DNA of 64,000 nucleotides from Pavona decussata (taxonomy: Eukaryota): assembly GCA_977016875.1 (NCBI GenBank), contig CDRNST010000089.1:1364001-1428000 (forward strand), read 5' to 3'. This document shows, one piece after another, positions 1 through 12,416 of the stretch. The translations under genes were made by a program, and so were the position numbers. Every line of letters begins with the position of its first letter. Positions within the stretch are counted from its first letter, which is position 1. The notes under the pieces were generated by a model that searched no databases, had not been told where the DNA came from, and worked only from the letters and a program-made list of their open reading frames with translations.

Positions 1-3000
1 AAAAAGCATCGTAACGTTGTAAGTAGCCTCTCTTTCGTAGCCGATTCATAAATAATGTCATTAAGTATTAAGTTTCAGTAATATTGTAGAACGTGAAGAA
101 CCCTTTTTAAAAAAGCCATTTATCTAATAGAGAACCTACACTCTTACAACAAATTGACCCTACATTGTTGGAAATAGCGTCTAAATTTCAAAGCTTAGTT
201 TAAAAAGTTGAGATGGAATTATACCGTTATAAAATTTAGATTTTCTTATCGTTTATTTTCGTTTTTACATTTTTTGCGCGCCACCATTTTGGATTCTATG
301 ACTTCAAACGGATTTCCAATTATTCTACACAAGAACTTCTGCTTCCTGACAAAAGCGGCAACCTATGACGTTTTAAAATCGAAAATGAACACTAAAATGT
401 TGTCTTCGCTTTCTAAGCTAAGCTTTGAAATAATGACAATATTTCCAACAATTGAACGTCAATTTTTTTTGTAAGACTATCTTTTTTTAAGTTGGCTGTT
501 AAAATAGATTATACTAACTTTTGTTGAACATCGTTTCTTCAAAGACATGCTCTCTGAAAACTGCGGTATTATTATGTGCAGGGTTTTTCTTAACTCAGAT
601 TGTTTTAAACTTATTCTCAAGAAAAGGCTTGAAGAAGACACCTTCATAGAGCTTACTCGTAAATGACTACCATTTTAATATGTTTTCGTTCGTATTCAAA
701 TTAGCCCTTCTCCTCTTTCTTAAACTCAAAATCCAATGAGCGAGGCAAGAAGGGCTAATTCGAGTGCAAGCAAAAGAATATTAAAATGACGGCCATTTTG
801 GCATAAGGTTTATTTAAACAGGGTAAAGTACACAAAGTATACAGAAATTTATAATATTCAATATAATGAGATTAGATAAAAGGCAATGCAAATACTTTGC
901 AGAGCGGCTAAATGTACTTGGAAAACTGAACAGTGCTTCACTTAACACCGCCTTGTATATCTTTAGCGACGTGCACAAATAATTTAATAAGAGGCTTCTC
1001 GCCATCCTTTGTATAGTATCTACAGTTTCAACACGCGTTACATAAAGAAGTATAACAAAGACACTTTGACTACTATATGGAATATGGTGATAATGGTACA
1101 GAGACCTGGTATACGTAACTACTAGTCACAGATCTTGAATACGTGCACGCATGCATGCATGCATGCATCCATCTATTCATCCAAAGACCAGTCAAGCCAA
1201 CGAACCAACGCGACAACCAACCAAACCAGCCAGTCATCCATCCGTCCATTCAAAGGCTCATCAAACGCGTAGACGTAGCTGACTCCCCTTACCAGAAGCT
1301 CTGCGAGGGTAGACTGACATGCCGACAAATGTCAGCTCGGACTTTTACAAATAGGCACAACTTAACGTCATTCCGAATTACGAGGACATATATCTTTTGC
1401 CTTTATTTTGTCTTAGAAATCTTCAGGAAAACAAGTTAAAAAGAATTCAAAAGCCCATGTTCGAGGGTCTAGTTTGGTTGAGAGATCTGTAAGTAAATCG
1501 TTTCATTGTCTGGATCGGTATGACTTCTTTTTGGTGCACTTCTCTTCTTCACAACAGTTGACAAGCTTTTGCGTTAATGGCTAACACTTCCATTTTCTGT
1601 TTCGCTTTTCAGGTTTCTTGCAGAAAACTTCATTTCTCAAATTGACGAGGACGCTTTTGTTGGGCTTCATCAATTAAGATATTTGTAAACTTTATTTTTC
1701 TGGAACAGTCTGATAAAAGTTAAATAGGATTGATCGATATATGAATGAGAATAATTTTCGTATAGTTTCACTTGGTCAAGTTTCGTTCCTTAAATCTAAA
1801 AGGGAACTCAAGGTAAACCAATACACTGGAGAAAAAACATCTGCTGAGCCACTTAGAATAGTAGCCGGGTCATACACCTCCCTACGGTAAAATTGATATG
1901 TTGCTCTAACAGGAACGTACGCAAGATTATGTCTTCATGAAAATATCCAGCCGTATTGTCAATTTTCTTTGAATTCCTTTCATGGATAAGCATTTGGTTA
2001 CGTAGAAACATAAGTGACTAGTAATAATTTAATATTACAATTTTAATTACGATTTTAAATTTTTTTTCTTTGTTTATTTGGAACCAGAGATTTAACAGGA
2101 AACTTATTGCGAAAGATAAAAAATAAAGCATTGGGCCATTTGACGGATTTATCTTTTCTGTAAGTAAACAACTTAGTTATTGATCATGACACTTTTTTGC
2201 AATTTATTCCTTTTTTAAAATTGTTCATGCGCATCAGAGAGAATAATCTGTTTGGACGACACTGAACCTCAAACTATTGTTTCCAAAACCAAGAAGTACG
2301 AAGAAGTTCCAAAAAACTCATCAATGAAATGCTTCAATTCAAAAAGCGTTATCAATTTTATTTTAGCTTATAACAATGCTGGACGCGCTGCTAAAGTTGT
2401 TTAACATCACGCATAACATTTGTTAAAATTTGGTCGAAATGTTTGAAGACCAGCAAAACATTCATCCAACCAAAAATATTGTTCAAACATTATCTAACAT
2501 GGGCAGCTAAACGTCTCGATGACAAAATGAATAGTGCTGTGCCCCGTTTCCCCAGTTCACCGAAAAAGCTTGTTCCTGGGGTCTTTGCATTTCACTTCAG
2601 TAGAAAAAATCATGCAAAGCCCCTTTTGCTCGAACATTCCAACATGTTAAAAAAAACTTATCGTCCAACCCCCTCCAAAACTGTTATTTCCGTAAAGATC
2701 GCTGAGAAACAATGGACTGGATCTAGGAAATTCTTCTGTTCCAGACGACAACAAGTTATCAGCAGTAATAACATTGTAAGTAATCCTGTTTAATTGTTAT
2801 TGCTTTTTGTTTTGGATTTATGACTAGCCAGAGAGGACGTCCTTCAGTTTTTCACTTCGAATAAAAGGAAAAAGTGAAAATATTGAGTCGAAATCAGTGT
2901 TAAATCTTTTTCAACGTATTTTTTGGGGGTGAGGTTATAAAAAACCTCAAGATTCATTTATCCCCCTGACTCGACTTTTTACACACATCTCATCCTTAAA

Positions 3001-5960
3001 ATGATGTAGTTTATTGTAATTTGCAGTAGTTTTTTTTGTGTATAAAGTGTCAAGATAGTAATTTGTTATGAGTCTAATAAATGTCCAAGTACGCATGCAT
3101 TTGTCAATGACTGAAAAATTACCTCAATCATTTCACGGCACCAGACTTAAACATAACATCACATTTCATTCACAAGAGATGCTTCGTTTGTCAGTCTAAT
3201 CAGGTGAAATTAGTAGACGTGAACCTATTTTAATGCAATAGGTCATTTTCCAGTTGCTGTGAACCTCAATATGAAAGCGAGGCTCAGTGCAAAGCTTTTC
3301 ATACGAAGATTAGTTTTGTTTGCGTTTTAATGAAAACTAGACTTAACACTTAGCCTCGCTTTGACAATGAGGTCCAAAGCAACTCGGAAATGGCCTATTC
3401 ATCTGAAGTAGGATGTGAAAGAGGGTACAGTCACAAAACGCTGTTGATCATAATTTTGATATGATTACCAACTTTTTTCCAGAGATCTTTTTGGTAATCG
3501 CATAAAACGAATAGAACGAGACATTTTCTCCACGATGCACTTTTTAGACCTGCTGTGAGTGTAATTACATTTTTAACATCACAGACTAAAGTTAAAGGGA
3601 CTGTTAACACAGGAGGGAGGCTGGGAAGAAATAGAGACATTTGTACATTTTTACGAGCTAGCCGGGAATACAATAAAACGAGTACAGGAATGGACTTGTG
3701 TTCGCTTGGTCACTCAGCTGTAAACTACCTGGGGATTTGATCCAGTAACTTATTGAAAAAGGACAGCGGACTCAAATGAGCACATAAAGGTGTCACGAAA
3801 TAATTACTTGTTTAAGTGAGCACGTTTTAATGGTATGCATGAAAGTTTCAAGACGCTCTACAGCATCCTTTTTAAACTATGAACTCACGCTCTATTTGTT
3901 GTTAGGGGGTAAAATTTACTGGTATGCGTGGAAGCTTTAAGGACGATAATTTCGAATGAGACATTACCATTGCCGGATATGGCGTCCGCATCAAAGAGTA
4001 TTTGAGCCATCACGGTAACGATCCAGCAGAGCTTCTTTTAAGAAGGTCTTCTGGACGTTAAAACATTATTTTAGAGGGCGGAAATGATCCGAATGGAATG
4101 TATAGTTAAGAGAGTGATTTGGATCGTCATTTCAAAAATGAGAACGAGTTAAGAATCTAGGTAAGCAGCAGTAAACTTTCACACAAGACGTCGCTTCGCA
4201 GCTGCCACGCAACCGAGCAAATGGTCTTGAAATGCAATGAAATACGATTCAGATCGCTTGCCACGTTAGAAACTTTGCTTATTTCACGAAATAAATCTTC
4301 GAATTTATATTTGGCAGCGTAGAGCTCAAACTTTGTGATTGAAAACATCTTTTTTGAGCGTCAGAGTAAAATAATCTAGTTCAAGCACTCGTAAATATCG
4401 AGTTACGGCTGGCGTCCTCGTTTTGTATTCGATTTTCATCATTATTATTCAGAAAGGAACTTATTCCACATCTGCCCTTTTTCATCCAGATTTGCAGGAT
4501 ATGTTGCCATTCTATTTTGCAAGTCTCCCAAAATAATTAATGAACATTGACCTATTACTTAAAGGGTATTTCACACAAAAAATTAAATTGCTTCGTTAAA
4601 AAGGCCTTGTACCTATACGTATTTAGTTGTACCGTTTTATTAATAACCACAAAACAAAATACATGATTTCTCATATTAATCATTTTCTGTACAACAATCC
4701 CCTTATTACAAGAAATGGATGCAAAACAAACATATGACGCCCAAATACAACGACCACATTTATACACTAGTTTATATCCTCTGCATTCACGAGTTGCTCA
4801 TAAGAGCCTATTTTAAATTTAAGGGAGACTTAAAGATTTCTTGTGTACTTTAGGGAGAGGTTGTGTTGTATTTGTGTACCTAATATGCTGCAGTGACAAC
4901 ATAGGAGAATTTTTGAAGAGCACGTACCACAACATTTTGTATTCTAGTTTTTAAACCGCCTGTTTATTACAGTTTTTTAGCACAAAAATCATAAATCTTA
5001 ATCAATGAAACTGTTAGGGTGTATAGCATGTCCAAATCTAACGTGAATAAAATATGACGGTGACGTCATTTGTTCCATGCAGACGCCATCTTGAATCCGC
5101 CATCTTGGATTTCTTGGTTCTCCATTACCTCGCTAAACCGTCCAAATGTTTGGTGTTATATATTAAAATTTGTCCCTTTGTGCTTTGTGGCAATCAATAC
5201 AAAGAACTCAATACCCAGAATCAGCCAGTTTTCTTGATTATCTTTCCTTTTTTGCAGGTCTTTATCTCTCAATCAAATCACGTATATTGATGAGGAGGCT
5301 TTCCAGTACAATTTCTTCCTCAAATACATGTAAGATAATACAGACACAGAGTGCTGAAATAATACAGATTAATTGCTTAATACAGGTTAGAATGTTTTAT
5401 AGAGACATTCCACGAAAGACGATTTCAGGGAAATGGAAGAAGACCGGCAAAATGATTTTACTGCTTTCAATACCTTTTAGTCTTCCCGATTTGCTAAATG
5501 CACTTTCAGCATTTTATTACCAATATGATCACAGTTAGAATGATTTCATTTTACTTAGTGGTCGCTTGATACAGGTCAAGCTTAAAACTTTTTACATCAC
5601 AAAAGGTGACCTTGCCCCTTCCGTAGATGTGAAAGCTTACAACAAAGTAAGAGAGGAATTGTCCAAGACAGTTCACTTAGAAGATGGTCATTGCTTCAAC
5701 GGGGCCCTGTAAAAGAATTCAAGCCTCATTTTTTAGTGGTTTCTTCAGGTGGCAATTTGCATGCTTGTGAGGGCATTTTTGGGTACCCGTTTTCCAAAAC
5801 AGGCTTTCCGGACCTTTTGGGTGTCGCATTTGAACCTGGTGCACCAAGAACGCCTGAGATAAAATGGGTTATAAAAATAAGCTTCACAGGCTTTTTCGGT
5901 AATGCTTTAGAACACAGCCTTACCTTTGAAATTATGTACAGAACAAGACCTTGGACGTTA

Positions 5961-5991
<31 letters not shown>

Positions 5992-8900
5992 AGGAAAGAA
6001 AAAATGACCTTTTTTCCTGTAACTTCCCAATTCCGGGTAACTATCAATTAACGCATTGCCTTATAAATTTTATAGTTGTTTCAGTTGTTATACTCAAAAC
6101 ACAGAGCGAATGTATTTTCTTTTTCTAATTTTATATTCATTAGATTTCTGGATGGAAATCGCATTCGTAGAATCAACAGACGTCATTTCTCTTGGCTGGG
6201 TGCAAAAGAGCTTGAGATTCTGTATGTACCATGATATACACAGTGGTTTATATATCTGAAGACAAGCTAACAATGTGAAATGCCTCAGAAGAGAAAGGCT
6301 CTATGATGTTGACCTTTAGAGTGGGTTTCCCTTGAGTGCAGGAAAACCAAAACCAAAGTAATTACTCTGGTCAATCACAACAGACGCAAACAATGACTCG
6401 AAGCAAATACTGTAACCGGTCCGTGGCGAGGGAAAACGCGTGCGAGCAAGTCATGGTTGACATTGGTTTGGTTCCCCCATCTGTTGAGAAAGTGCCGCGA
6501 GTTTTTCTTATAAATCACAGAGCGTGTTTTCGACACTCAATTGAAAACCACTCTATTAACCATACACAAACACTTAATAACGAAGTCAGTAGACACATAT
6601 TTCTACAATTTAAACGAAAAGCTACATATGTAATTAGGTCCCTAACTGCTTATGGTCATGTAATTTACATTGTATTATATAAAGGGAGCATCCGAAATGA
6701 AAACAGAATGTGGCCGAAGTGCATGGTTAAGTTGAGACATCTGATGTGAGTTACTGTGACTCATTAAGTGTTGCTCATCGCCTGTTTTTCAAAATAACAA
6801 ATGGATCGCCGCCATTTTGAATACACTAGAAGGCCCTGGGACACAAATTTCGTAGCCGCAAATAGCACAAGAAGAAAGTTAATGCTAACCAGCTTTTATT
6901 TGAATGCTCACACTTTTAACTTTTTACCCTATGTAGACCCCCCGTGGGGAGAAGGGGGAAGATATTCTGTCCGCGCCGACTTTAAACGTTTTGAGCACAG
7001 GCCATCAAACCTTGTGACCTTTTGAGAAATTTATCTGGGAAAATTTCCATGCGATAGATCAGTGGTCACTGAATTTGATGTTACCATATCAAACAAATTT
7101 TGAGGGGAAGTGTTTTAGAATTAGTAATATTCGTGTTTTTAATGACGAAAAATTAACTATCTTACAGTAATTTCCATGTTCTTAGATCAGATAAGTGTTT
7201 TTACTTTGGCTTTTGATTGCGTTTGATCAATTTTCGTGGTTTCTGACGTTTTGGGGTAATTCAGAAATCCAAGATGGCGGATCCAAGATGGCCGACGTTT
7301 GGAAATGATGGCGTAATTTCTACGTAATATGACGCCTTCAATTCCCACTGTGGGAAACATCATTGGGAAACATCATTGGGGTACTATCTATGCTCCCTTC
7401 CCCCACCCTCTCCTCCACACCACCCCCAGCCACTGAAGACGACAAAGATCCCGGTCTAGATAGGGGTAAAAAAGTAAGTTCATCTATGACGCCAGACTTC
7501 ACTGCATGAGGAAAAAAGATTAACAACTAATGCATTGCTCTGCAGTACTCTTTCAGGAAATCCACTCCGGGTGATCGAAGAAGGTGCTTTCGACAGATGT
7601 CAGAACCTGGCGACCTTGTAACTATGTGCTTTGCTCCTTCTTGAACTTGGTTATATCGGATGCAATTTTAATTAATTCAAACGTTAGGTCTTATCCACTT
7701 AGTTGAGTCCAAGGATTCGCCCTGGCGAAGGGCTAGCGCTCGAAAGGTCAGCTCTCGAAACTCTTTACAAGTGAACAAATATTCGTTTCCACTTCCCATA
7801 AACGCTGCACCACAGTTTCTATAAGAGCTAGGACTTTAAAACAATGTGATAATCACACCAGAGATTCTGGGAAAATGTAACCGCGATACCTTAACCACTT
7901 TGTGTTTTTGGATTTCAGATTAATGGTAAACACAGAAATAAAGACAATACAGTTGAGGACATATTCGGCCTTGCCAAGCCTGCAAGAAGTTTTCATGTAC
8001 GCTTATCGAATTATAACGATGTAGAATGGACCTTGTTTTGTTATTTACAATTAGAAAGATAATAACGCGAGATTAAATACCGTGTGCCATTCTCTTTCTT
8101 ACAGTTGGTCTTTTAAAGAAGTCGGTTTCAGCCCGGTTCTATTACAGACACGTTCAAATTCAGTAGCCGGCTTATGCTTAAGCTCTATTCTATTTTTATG
8201 ACAAATCAGTATGAGAAAACTGATTTTAATTTACAGCTTACCTTCACTTGCGAAGTCGATTCCTGTCTTTGTGCCAACACCAGTTAATGTATATCTGGAA
8301 GAAACTGGTTACACGTGCCTATCCGATGACCACTGGCAAAACTACTACGCATGCTCACCATGCAGCTATGGTACTTATAAGACTGAGGAGGGATGCACTC
8401 CTTGTCCTCCAGGTAAAATAGCGGTGATTAAACTAATCGCCCACGGGTACGTTATAATTATACATCTTGGTTCACTTCTTAGTGGTCTCTGCAAATAACA
8501 TGTGCTAATTGCATTGGACAATGGAACCCTGTGTTTAATCGGCTGCAGAGAGTACATAGTTCATTCTGATCAGTGGCTACGATTATCATGATGACGCATT
8601 CATGCGCGGTGCACTACTGGGTTTCCTTAAAACAGTGAATTTGACGAGGCATCAAGACATTTTATGATAAAAATGATTTGCAAAACATGACAAGAACAAT
8701 GAATCACAGATGAGATTGTTTTGGATATTGCAAAACGAGTACACCAATAACTGCTTAGAAATGACCAAAGCTACCTATTAGGGTGCAAGTGTTCAAGTTT
8801 CAAGTCAAGTTTACTGTGTAGATACGCTAAGCTTTAGTGAGACAGCTCACCAGCTAGTTTTCAGATATTAAGCACGAAAATAAATTTAAAACAACTAAAC

Positions 8901-11900
8901 ATCGTGGCTATACACAAGTAACTAGAATAACAAAGAAGCTATAAAAACGAGCACTTACGTTGTGCCCCAGTCAGGTTGTCTCTTGTACACATGAGATTGG
9001 CCCTGATAATCACTGGATTTTAGTTGCTCTCACAAAAATTCAGTGTGATATTTGTTTCCTTCACAGTATCATGCTGGCCACTTTCGTCACAGCGCATGAA
9101 TTTAGTCGGTAATATACAAGGCATACGCCACATACGAGACTAGTAAATGACGTACCTAGTTCAATCAACTAGGTGAGTCCTTCATAATAGGCCATTTCCG
9201 AGTTGCTGAGAACCTCACTATGAAAGCGAGGCTAAGTGCAAAACTTCTCATATGAAAATTTGTTTTGTTTGCATATGAATGACAACTAATTTTCATAACA
9301 AAAACTTTGCACTTAGCCTCGCTTTCATAATGAGGTTCAAAGTAACTCGGAAATGGTCTATTGATGACACATCGATACAAACATTAGGGAGTCTTTCCTA
9401 GAAATTAACCCGGCAGAGGGTTATGAAACTATTGCATAATATCAAAAGTGATTTTCCATTCCAGGCGGTTTTTATCAGGACACCTTGGCGCAAGAAGGAA
9501 TAATTGCGCATGGTACGGGCTGCAAGGAGTGTCCTCCAGGTACCTATGTTGATCCTCTAAGAGCTCCTGGCAAAGCAGAGTCAGATTGTTCAGCTTGTCC
9601 TAAAGGTATAATTTCTTTGTTTAATAAATAAAACCATTTTGCTCCTCAAGATCCTCCCGTTCATGATGGTAACCAGCGTGATTATAAGGTGTCCGTTGGC
9701 TTTGTTTACGATATTGAACCATTTCTCCTGTTTTAACAGTTTACTTATTTCAATTTTTCTAACGACTAAATATCTCGCCAAAGGCCACTAATTTTGTAAC
9801 CTATCTTCTTAATCCAATCAAATACGTGCAAAAAAGTTACAAATGGTTTAACATCTTTCGACAGGTACAAACCTAAGAGTTTTTGCGGGCTTCAGAGCAT
9901 GCTTCTGTCTCCATGGTAACTATCGCCTGGACCGATTCGGTGAATGCCTGGCCTGTCTTCGAGGGTACAAATGTGGTAACGGCACCGTTACTTTAGCCAG
10001 AGGCTTTTACTGGAAGTGGTCTCATCACAAGACAAAAGAACTGTATACTCGGTTCAAAGACAGCCTGCAGATAACTGATAATTCATACAATAAAAGGTTG
10101 ACGAAATACCCAAATTTTTTGCCTTTGGCGTACGCGTGTCCAGTTGTTGAGTCATGCCTTGGAACCATGGACTCGACTTGTTCCCAGGGCTACGAAGGTC
10201 CTCTCTGCGGTGTATGCGCTGAGGGATATTTCAAGTTGTTAACCAAATGCCAGAAATGTCCATCATTACCTTGGATCGTTGCTCAATTCCTTGTGGCCAT
10301 TATCCTCGTATTCCTTGTCACATTTCTGTCGCTCAGGGATAAGAAGAAGGAGGCAAACACTCAAAGATCTGTGGCAGACGTTTTACTTGCAAGGTTCAAG
10401 ATAGTTATCAGCTTCTATCAAGTCACTTCCGGGACATTGAACGCTTTCTCGTACGTCGAGTGGCCTGAGACAATGGCAAGTATCGGCAAGTACACGGGAA
10501 TGCTGCAACTCAATCTTTTCCAAATCGTCCCCATCCACTGCTTGAACAACTCGGCAAAAGTCGACGCTTACTCCACATTGCTTATGTTTGTTGCTGTCAA
10601 CGTCTTGGCAGTAGCCATTCCAGCATTTTTCTTTCAATGTAAAAAGATCATCGTCAATCGACGAGATGAGATGCCTCTTGGGAAGAAACGTGAAGTCCTA
10701 AAGCTCACAAAGGAGCGTTCCTATCGCGCTGCGTTTCTGGTGCTTTTCATCACATACCCATCAACGTGCATCCAGATCTTCAGAATGCTCCCTCAGACGT
10801 GCCAAGAGATTTGTAGCGAGGACCAGAATGCTGGCTGTTAGTCCTTCCTCCAAGCAGACTTCTCTGTAAAGTGCCATGATGAGAAATACAATCATTTCGT
10901 AAAATTTTCGTACGTCCTCACCGCCTACCCAGTTGCCTTTCCACTGGTGACTCTTCTGGTCTTATGGAGGTGCCTTTCCAAATCAAAAGAACCAAGTAAT
11001 CGAAACGAGCTTCATTCCGCTTTGGCCAGGGGGTTGAGATTCTTCTACGAAAACTATTCGGACAATTGTTGGTTCTGGGAGATTGTGGAACTGGCGCGCA
11101 AGGTGCTGTTGACTTCAGCACTTTTACTTGCGGATGCCCAGAGTCGTACATACATTGGTTCGGCGGCTATTGTGTCTGGACTTTACACAATATTGTTTGC
11201 ATGGTACAAGCCTATAAAGGACTCCTCTGAGCACTGGTTACAGCTGATTTCACTCATGGCATCCTCTGTCAACTTTACAGTTGGAATGTTGCTCAAAGTA
11301 AGATTCTGATTTAGTATCACGGATTTAAAATATCAGGAGATTGACCTTTTGCAGTGACTAAATTAGTTTATTGGTTTTCATGTGCGTTGATGTGACGATA
11401 GCTTTCAGTTTAACGATAGGTCTGTTTAGATCTTCGACTCTGAGACATACTCCGAGATTAAATCAAAAAAACTTTTTCTAGGGTATTTTCTAGGGTATAT
11501 TTGGGACTATCTGAAGATAACCACTCAGGTTAGCCATTCACAGTTTCTTATTTCGACTCTTTCAGACAAGTACGCTAGCGTCGTTTCGGGCAACCTTCGA
11601 AACGAGGTTACGTACTACTTTCATCAGAATAACCTCCTCGGTCTCAGCCACTAATTTGTTCTGCTGTTTTAAAACCTTTATTTGTCTTGGTTGTTTGTTT
11701 CTTTTTTTTTTACAGATTCCAGACGAAGTTATCTCCTCAGCGGGTGACAAAGAAGTGGATAAGATAATGATTACTGTTTTGCTCGTAACGGCCAACATAA
11801 TGGTTATCGCCGTAGTGGCAGGTACAAATATTACGACAAATCAACCTTTAATAAATAATTGTCGTCCAGCATATTTTTTCTAAATGGTAGGTTAAAAATA

Positions 11901-12416
11901 GGCTGGGGAATTCGATAGGGATCGACATCCAGATAAATTTAGCTACACCAAACTATGTCATTGTTAAACTGTGCTCCCAATTTTAGTCTAACGTATTTAC
12001 TCGAAAAAGCGATGTAGTGCTGATTAACGACGGTGTCTCCTAGTTCACGAATCCCTTCTTAGATGTATCCCAAGTATTGCTTCAATAGCCTGTTGTCATC
12101 CACCGATGTTTAATCTGTACTTTTCTTCTTCACAGTGCAGTATTTAGTGAACCTTGGTCGGATGCTGTGGGAGTGGCGTCAGAACCCTCAGTGCAGTGTA
12201 GACTGCTGCTTGTCACTTGTACTCACACTGCAAGACATCGGCAGTACGGCAACCACGGATCAACAACCTGAGCTCAACCAAGGAACATTTGAAGAAAGCT
12301 TTGATATGTCAGAATTGGGGGAAGCTGATGATAAAGTGGAACAGGAAGGTGCAGCGAAGAGGAAAGACGCCATCAAACGCGGTCACATGAATCGGAACTC
12401 ATCCGCGTTGACATAA
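1..12416 (+). CDS. LRR + Cys-rich repeat + ~9-TM receptor-like membrane protein; 5'-incomplete; one in-frame TAG at 10839-10841 (possible null allele or young pseudogene)
   Basis: Phase-consistent AG/GT exons: <1-18, 1417-1488, 1613-1684, 2088-2159, 2698-2775, 3483-3554, 5258-5329, 6144-6221, 7546-7617, 7919-7996, 8237-8412, 9465-9605, 9865-11297, 11716-11821, 12136-12416. The 72/78-nt exons each encode one LRR (e.g. FLAENFISQIDEDAFVGLHQLRYL, TLSGNPLRVIEEGAFDRCQNLATL). They are followed by CSPCSYGTY/CTPCPPGGFY/CKECPPGTY repeats, CSQGYEGPLCGVCAEGYF, and a multipass region containing GLRFFYENYSDNCWFWEIVELARK. ORFs 10098..10841 and 10947..11309 are in the same frame, separated only by the TAG. 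Confidence 0.88.
646..813. mobile_element. Palindromic MITE-like element
   Basis: Imperfect inverted arms: cattttaatat...caaattagcccttct and agaagggctaattcg...atattaaaatg. Confidence 0.6.
1143..1250. repeat. Degenerate tetranucleotide repeats (ATGC)n/(CCAA)n/(ATCC)n
   Basis: Directly visible; explains spurious ORF 1143..1439. Confidence 0.75.
3237..3399. mobile_element. MITE, copy 1 of a family (TA TSD, GGYC...GRCC ends)
   Basis: aataggtcattttccagttgc...gcaactcggaaatggcctatt TIRs; clearly homologous to 9186..9362. Confidence 0.8.
6317..6555. mobile_element. MITE (tagagtgggttt...aaaaccactcta)
   Basis: Terminal inverted repeats; a related partial copy ends at ~55097 (acactcaattgaaaaccgctc). 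Confidence 0.7.
6923..7470. mobile_element. Non-autonomous piggyBac-like DNA element
   Basis: tttaCCCTatgtagacc...ggtctagatAGGGgtaaa TIRs with TTAA-like flanks. Its internal segment (aatccaagatggcggatccaagatggc) matches ~5085-5112 in inverted orientation. Confidence 0.55.
7715..7753 (+). ncRNA. Decayed minimal type-I hammerhead ribozyme motif of a Penelope-like repeat
   Basis: gcc-CTGGCGA-agggc-tagc-gctc-GAAAG-GTC-agct versus the core CUGANGA-helixII-GAAA-NUH; the core is mutated. Confidence 0.55.
9186..9362. mobile_element. MITE, copy 2 of the 3237..3399 family
   Basis: aataggccatttccgagtt...aactcggaaatggtctatt; almost fully palindromic (atgaaagcgaggctaagtgcaaa / tttgcacttagcctcgctttcat). 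Confidence 0.85.

Follow-up and report, generated by a model that had tools for sequence, protein, structure and literature searches.

Here we describe a gene on the forward strand of a 64,000-nucleotide (nt) stretch of the coral Pavona decussata (GCA_977016875.1, contig CDRNST010000089.1, positions 1,364,001-1,428,000), referred to below as the window, with positions counted from its first letter and the contig abbreviated as C89. The best explanation, to which we assign a probability of roughly 0.72, is that this gene belongs to a large, cnidarian-expanded family of multi-pass surface proteins that carry a membrane module resembling the fungal Flc/Pkd2 proteins, and that the intact members of this family act in sensing. 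The locus is not a chance arrangement, since its membrane domain has at least 83 related places in the host assembly, a 602-Mb cnidarian genome, and 76 relatives were recovered by a word search of the protein database (down to E 1e-271).

Gene structure and ectodomain

The gene was placed by three-frame translation and by tblastn with database relatives, and its 3′ half consists of five exons (A to E) separated by GT..AG introns. Exon A (8237-8412), recognised from its translation, its splice sites and contigs of runs X7 and X9, encodes a linker and the first Cys repeat (CSPCSYGTY..CTPCPPG). Further Cys repeats (GFYQD..CKECPPGTY..CSACPKG) are encoded by exon B (9465-9605), which was placed by tblastn, splice sites and spliced contigs. 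The 1433-nt exon C (9865-11297), unbroken in the X7 contig, comprises the Cys-rich stalk, the domain DUF7630 and membrane helices 1-8. Exon D (11716-11821) adds an outer loop and membrane helix 9 (approximately 11764-11821) according to the X7 joints, hydropathy and a paralog model, and exon E (12136-12416; splice sites and X7 contig) encodes an acidic cytoplasmic tail ending in the stop codon TAA at 12414-12416. The 2519-nt X7 contig skips all four introns at these borders and the X9 contig skips the first two, so that intron 8413-9464 is absent from both. Although the RNA nature of the two runs is an automatic guess, their contigs are presumably RNA-derived because they are correctly spliced, which argues that the gene or a near-identical copy is transcribed and spliced.

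An earlier note, made from the letters of the window, had proposed an architecture of LRRs (leucine-rich repeats), Cys repeats, about nine helices and an acidic tail, and this is borne out by the spliced exons of the X7 contig and by nine helices in an AlphaFold model of a paralog. The motifs it quoted all occur on the forward strand where it had placed them: CTPCPPG/GFYQD bridges the splice 8412/9465, CSACPKG/TN also reads across a splice, and exon C holds KIVISFYQV, VEWP, SFLQADFSVKC, GLRFFYENY..WFWEIVELARK and YKPIK.

Upstream of exon A lie at least eight exons of one LRR each (1417-7996), all of 72 or 78 nt and each opening with the last base of a split codon. Those at 1417-1488, 1613-1684, 2088-2159, 3483-3554 (72 nt each) and 6144-6221 (78 nt) are open and follow the pattern xLxxNxIxxIxxxxFxxL between AG..GT borders, and the 72-nt exon at 7546-7617 combines the pattern with a weak LRR_8 match. 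A probable 72-nt LRR exon at 5258-5329 is assigned from a looser pattern only, without transcript evidence. The last LRR-like exon (7919-7996, 78 nt) has a length that fits the X7 contig: together with 7546-7617 it amounts to 150 nt, in length exactly the extension of that contig upstream of 8237. The repeat pattern was found in these eight exons and in at least two more before the window start (-851 to -780 and -53 to 18), and an LRRNT-like CPxxCxC exon lies further upstream at about -1205 to -1086. The ectodomain is thus shown to comprise at least ten LRRs, one per small exon, starting upstream of the window. Open pieces with SRCR and Sushi/CCP domains were also observed on the forward strand at about -2599 and -5952 (L015, C89:1354001-1364000), 1.4-4.7 kb upstream of the LRRNT-like exon; they are either 5′ exons of the LRR gene or part of a separate gene.

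Pfam searches were run exon by exon, with the pieces on each side of a premature in-frame TAG codon in exon C (see below) scanned separately. DUF7630 (PF24633) was found directly before helix 1 at 10134-10259 (33.3 bits, cut-off 27; residues 95-136 in the translation of open frame 9852-10838), and it was matched in 32 of 33 relatives. Ephrin_rec_like (PF07699, formerly GCC2_GCC3) scored 20.1 bits in exon A and 17.3 bits in exon B when these were scanned apart, the repeats being split by introns, and both scores are below its cut-off of 23.1; that cut-off is passed in the relatives P0011 (25.7 bits) and P0031 (28.2 bits). Exon B also matched TNFR_ELAPOR1_6th below cut-off (26.7 bits). A single LRR exon reached only 13.4 bits for LRR_8, which scores 50.3 bits in P0031. 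The gene is shown to encode a Cys-rich stalk, probably of ephrin-receptor-like/TNFR-like repeats, together with DUF7630. No TIR, kinase, GPS or 7tm family was matched in any exon, consistent with the earlier note's statement that features of these kinds are lacking, and no Pfam family was matched in the acidic tail (12136-12416). An outward ectodomain combined with nine helices would put the N-terminus outside and the C-terminus, with the acidic tail, in the cytoplasm.

Membrane domain

The membrane domain was modelled with AlphaFold from intact single-exon frames of the paralogs L002 and L003 rather than from the window copy. The model of L002, a 97%-identical copy, covers the stalk and helices 1-8 (predicted local distance difference test, pLDDT, 83.4; predicted template modelling score, pTM, 0.80), and that of L003, which covers the membrane domain only, has nine long helices (pLDDT 75.6, pTM 0.73). 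Helices 1-8 were mapped onto the forward strand of the window through the L002 model. Helix 1 (10266-10355) corresponds to the AlphaFold helix at residues 139-168 and is followed by helix 2 (10371-10445), with the invariant K-I...Q of KIVISFYQ, helix 3 (10566-10661) and helix 4 with a cytoplasmic extension (10677-10784). Between helices 4 and 5 an outer Cys-rich beta-hairpin loop is predicted (10800-10871; model strands 317-340), in which C317, D336 and C341 (model numbering) are invariant. Helix 5 (10881-10985) is succeeded by short cytoplasmic helices leading to the conserved FYENY (11019-11048), helix 6 with W-E..EL.RK (11076-11132), which lies inside a weak match to the Pfam family PF06011, helix 7, ending in ..YKP (11145-11207), and helix 8, with EHWLQL.. 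(11223-11297). Plain hydropathy detects only six strongly hydrophobic segments; helices 2, 6 and 7, in which the invariant K, E and R-K are found, have an amphipathic character, and conserved charged residues lie inside helices 2, 6 and 8. Given an outside ectodomain, the Cys-bearing loops after helices 2 and 4 would be outside, and the FYENY/WFWE and YKP..EHW segments inside.

This domain is neither a G-protein-coupled receptor (GPCR) nor of the canonical six-helix TRP/polycystin fold. Comparison of the profiles A1 and A2 with all PDB chains gave only chance matches (E 1.4-8.4), and Foldseek searches of the PDB with the stalk-plus-membrane and membrane-only models returned no match at E<=1e-3, with the GPCR and TRPM4 rows at template modelling scores (TM-scores) of 0.10-0.15. 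In wide searches with VIA-align, the best hits of the two models (Z 7.3 and 8.2) were unrelated helical proteins, and no GPCR or TRP protein appeared above Z 5.7 save for one partial match of 76 residues. GPCR, TRP, transporter, pannexin and Hrd1 rows in the fold searches were all weak and partial. The characterised seven-helix GPCR match that the earlier note had asked a fold search of AlphaFold models to look for was thus not encountered in the PDB. Among predicted models in the ESM Atlas, the same fold was found at TM-scores of 0.59-0.85, in clusters recorded most often from Cnidaria, Porifera (one sponge-dominated cluster), Chlorophyta and Haptophyta.

Relation to the Flc/Pkd2 family

Flc proteins were originally described as flavin carriers. 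Their Pfam family, PF06011 (curated cut-off 28.5 bits), is the only membrane family that recurs among the relatives of the window gene. The window piece 10842-11306 matches it at 19.4 bits and the intact 97%-identical copy at 15.3 bits, both below the cut-off. Matches at E<=0.01 were obtained in 10 of 33 relatives and were always colinear, with helices 3-9 aligned to profile positions ~148-400; P0022, which is 44% identical to the intact copy, exceeds the cut-off (30.0 bits), and others score 20-26 bits. More distant relatives yielded matches in five of 39 cases (best E 3.9e-9). A six-frame search of the whole genome produced nothing above the cut-off, as did the same search of 14 control genomes; the best match in the host (27.4 bits) is L013, a gene of the same superfamily with LRRs and the membrane domain. 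The ML-like domain TRP_N (PF14558) was matched in no exon and no relative.

Based on these profile matches, the membrane domain is very probably a divergent branch of the Flc/Pkd2 family, in line with the distant likeness suggested in the earlier note, although by Pfam's own rule the window gene is not a member of PF06011. The Pfam name 'TRP' is misleading for this nine-helix fold, because the models resemble no solved TRP channel, GPCR or transporter and the profile search of the PDB was empty. The fungal set comprises Flc1-3 and Yor365c of S. cerevisiae, Pkd2, Trp663 and Trp1322 of S. pombe, and Flc1 of Cryptococcus. In its AlphaFold model, fission-yeast Pkd2 has an outside N-terminal domain, a 405-residue nine-helix domain and a disordered inside tail (bioRxiv 10.1101/2022.08.11.503631), and judged from this published description the coral protein is laid out alike: in both, an N-terminal domain lies outside, a membrane domain of ~390-405 residues is predicted to have nine helices, and the tail on the inside is disordered. 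Both groups lack a solved structure and bear no likeness to canonical TRP channels. They differ in the ectodomain, which in the coral consists of LRRs, a Cys-rich stalk and DUF7630 and in most fungal members is the ML-like TRP_N, and in number, with dozens of animal copies in a genome against two or more Flc-like proteins in each fungus surveyed.

Family size and distribution

The 83 or more places in the genome were found with the 155-residue piece that follows the TAG codon, and most of them lie in open frames of 510-580 codons. Many share contigs: 16 lie on C332 within 1.1 Mb, eight on C49 and seven on C78, and arrays are found on C332, C49, C78, C118, C183, C240, C24 and C40. The members on C78, C118, C24 and C240 are spaced 80-500 kb apart and recur as frames of 560, 572, 579 and 581 codons, a pattern that would fit the duplication of large units. 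Plant-type LRRs precede the nine-helix domain in another coral subfamily, L013, which is homologous (hhalign probability 97%). L013 itself (C143:3359986-3363456, reverse strand) is split into overlapping frames at 1856-3433 and 1366-2073, which points to a frameshift or a short intron; the database protein P0077 (795 amino acids), 90% identical to it, is intact.

Named relatives come from Oculina, Acropora, Actinia and the sea cucumber Apostichopus and are all uncharacterised. The DUF7630 proteins of cnidarians and echinoderms are 36-82% identical over the stalk and membrane domain and share the order LRR/Ephrin_rec_like/DUF7630; the window copy differs from them by its premature TAG. Members are named by NCBI as 'putative leucine-rich repeat-containing protein DDB_G0281931' or 'DUF7630 domain-containing protein'. 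Literature searches under DUF7630, DDB_G0281931, GCC2_GCC3 with TRP, Ephrin_rec_like with coral, and nine-transmembrane with LRR returned nothing on the family, which is therefore catalogued yet absent from the searchable literature; the earlier note's candidate for an 'undescribed system' is thus known to the databases.

For the distant relative P0076, a library of 1.84 billion proteins yielded 1857 cluster representatives (E<=1e-3). In these relatives, which reach 2645 residues, the membrane domain usually lies near the C-terminal end and is accompanied by Ephrin_rec_like, DUF7630, BspA-type LRR, LRR_8, He_PIG, Chlam_PMP, HYR, EF-hand pairs or TIR; START and CAP-Gly are further partners on relatives. 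The EF-hand pair follows the membrane domain in P0139, in the presumed cytoplasmic tail, and stands just before the first helix in P0129 and P0131, and TIR_2 occurs on one other P0076 relative. By language-model features, the nearest named clusters are from ciliates. Protist Ephrin_rec_like proteins, mainly of haptophytes, green algae and ciliates, have the same predicted membrane fold (TM-score 0.69-0.74), and some carry PF06011; they differ in their ectodomains and tails, which include BspA-type LRR, Chlam_PMP, He_PIG, HYR, EF-hand, TIR and START domains. Together, the ESM Atlas and library relatives agree with the view in the earlier note that one membrane domain stands behind variable ectodomains in protists and non-vertebrate animals.

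A nonsense codon in the window copy

The premature TAG lies in frame at 10839-10841 on the forward strand, within the outer beta-hairpin that links helix 4 to helix 5. No other lesion was seen in the exons examined: all exons besides C are open and the splice sites are canonical. A contig of run X4, from a second sample, is identical to the window over 10778-10986 with the TAG included, and an assembly error was rejected as the source of the codon because this contig is independent. Elsewhere in the assembly, C104 (~480-514 kb) is colinear with the window, with ~95% identity over the gene region and 91-96% over an 8-kb flank, introns included; relative to window positions 9465-21000, C104:480000-514000 carries a ~20-kb insertion from 487699 to 508006. 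The C104 copy has GAG (Glu) at the site of the TAG and is open from exon B to the stop codon (exons B-E). A single G-to-T change makes the TAG, and the predicted product would end after helix 4 without helices 5-9, the most conserved half of the domain. Exon C differs between the two copies at 36 positions, of which 14 are non-synonymous (nonsense included) and 22 synonymous, giving a ratio of non-synonymous to synonymous rates (dN/dS) of 0.18; at the level of codon changes, the copies thus show the kind of divergence that purifying selection would leave. The variant sets of both copies occur as mosaics in other samples. The C104 copy is either a haplotype that was not collapsed or a segmental duplication of very recent date, and we favour alleles because more than 30 kb are colinear at 91-96% identity and the variants are shared in mosaic.

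It is rather probable that the window copy is a dead gene or null allele, in which case the finding concerns the family and not the locus; this is compatible with, rather than opposed to, the explanation preferred here. The position of the TAG after helix 4, its presence in the second sample and the GAG of the colinear C104 copy all speak for it. However, the TAG is the sole lesion, the low dN/dS relative to the intact copy implies that the stop is recent, and the mosaic-shared variants suggest that both copies are alleles of one expressed locus. We take the gene to be constrained and its TAG copy to be either a nonsense allele of recent origin or a duplicate that has only just died. A full-length product through readthrough or recoding of the TAG would suit a single in-frame stop within an otherwise intact exon of 1433 nt but is very improbable: at this site the 97%-identical copy reads GAG, an ordinary codon, cnidarians use the standard genetic code, and three of the other 82 genome matches carry one stop each, which is TAA or TGA and never TAG. 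Moreover, no recoding signal was seen, although no search aimed at one was made.

Proposed function and alternative explanations

We propose that intact members bind an outside ligand or surface via the LRR/Cys-rich part and that the binding signal would pass to the Flc/Pkd2-like membrane module, which, if it behaves like reconstituted fission-yeast Pkd2, may let calcium through or regulate calcium flux. The likely gate or coupling surface would be the group of conserved charged residues on the inner side (helix 2 K, FYENY, WE..EL.RK and YKP..D..EHWLQ). We hold the channel function tentatively, with the odds leaning somewhat against it, and the 'ligand-gated channel' of the earlier note is pure inference. 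It is quite unlikely that intact members are single-chain 'recognition channels', in which the LRR/Cys-rich part would directly gate a calcium-permeable nine-helix pore. The ligand of such a channel could be microbial, symbiont- or prey-derived, or a surface contact, and nonsense alleles would segregate as in other fast-turnover receptor families.

Several points weigh against the explanation of the gene as a sensing protein with an Flc/Pkd2-like module. The window sequence and most relatives fall under the PF06011 cut-off, the matches cover only positions ~148-408 of the 426 in the profile, and PF14558, which is N-terminal in the fungal family, is absent from the coral gene. The window allele is truncated by the TAG, and within exon C there are 37 differences between the X7 contig and the window. 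In addition, ligand binding and ion flux are putative, and the pore-forming nature of the Flc/Pkd2 proteins themselves is unsettled, channel activity of the fungal relatives resting on one reconstitution study.

The main rival to a channel function is that the family is real but its nine-helix domain is a transporter/carrier or a membrane anchor or trafficking scaffold, in which case the LRR/Cys-rich part would mediate adhesion or bind matrix. We consider this possible though unlikely. The Flc proteins are named flavin carriers, the role given for PF06011 proteins is calcium homeostasis and stress response only, and fungal Flc1, which affects calcium homeostasis, is just 1-2% identical to human TRPML1 and PKD2 (PMC9600462). 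The lack of likeness to any solved channel fold and the very different partners of the domain (Chlam_PMP, He_PIG, HYR, START and CAP-Gly) would likewise suit a general membrane module. Set against this, S. pombe Pkd2 let calcium pass upon membrane stretch when reconstituted (PMC9727806), conserved charged residues lie within helices 2, 6 and 8, and the EF-hand pairs of three relatives and the TIR of one suggest signalling. An unusual LRR-bearing GPCR of the LGR type, or a canonical TRP/polycystin channel, is scarcely credible. An LRR ectodomain with many helices superficially recalls LGR proteins and the Pfam name of the weak match is 'TRP', but no 7tm, ion_trans or PKD_channel family was found in Pfam, the helices number nine rather than seven or six, and such structures did not rise above noise when folds were compared. 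Toll-like receptors and LGR-type GPCRs are likewise membrane proteins whose LRR ectodomain is flanked by Cys-rich parts; unlike these, the coral gene has no TIR, single-pass anchor or seven-helix rhodopsin fold, and its nine helices adopt another fold.

Significance

Such proteins number from dozens to thousands in corals, sea anemones, echinoderms and many protists. Study of the members has been confined to fungi, and the superfamily, fungal Flc/Pkd2 included, is without an experimental structure. If the LRR ectodomain does control a calcium-permeable module, the family would represent a novel type of surface sensor in animals dependent on innate recognition of symbionts and microbes, and would offer the fungal Flc/Pkd2 field natural ectodomain swaps with which to study gating. 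Recognition channels, if they exist, would constitute a receptor-channel class without a solved structure and with dozens of copies in corals. The locus alone matters less, as one more family member with a null allele; it contributes a nonsense allele with its intact counterpart, a relative above the PF06011 cut-off, negative fold comparisons with the PDB and a wide range of protist partner domains.

Repeats in and around the gene

The intron between exons A and B contains a very high-copy repeat at 9077-9496 and also at 8797-8936. Summed contig depth rises to 656,531 in the DNA-like run X4 and to 105,974 in a metatranscriptome run; since many contigs end or rearrange at the repeat, it is probably a small transposable element. 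Downstream of the gene, a dispersed repeat of ~730 bp at 13174-13900 has counterparts of 71-78% identity at over 40 sites spread across many contigs. Inverted matches are seen at its ends as well (query 724-897), so that it resembles a transposon with terminal inverted repeats. A local inverted repeat of ~225 bp lies at 19818-20042, where the sequence matches itself in reverse at 80% identity.

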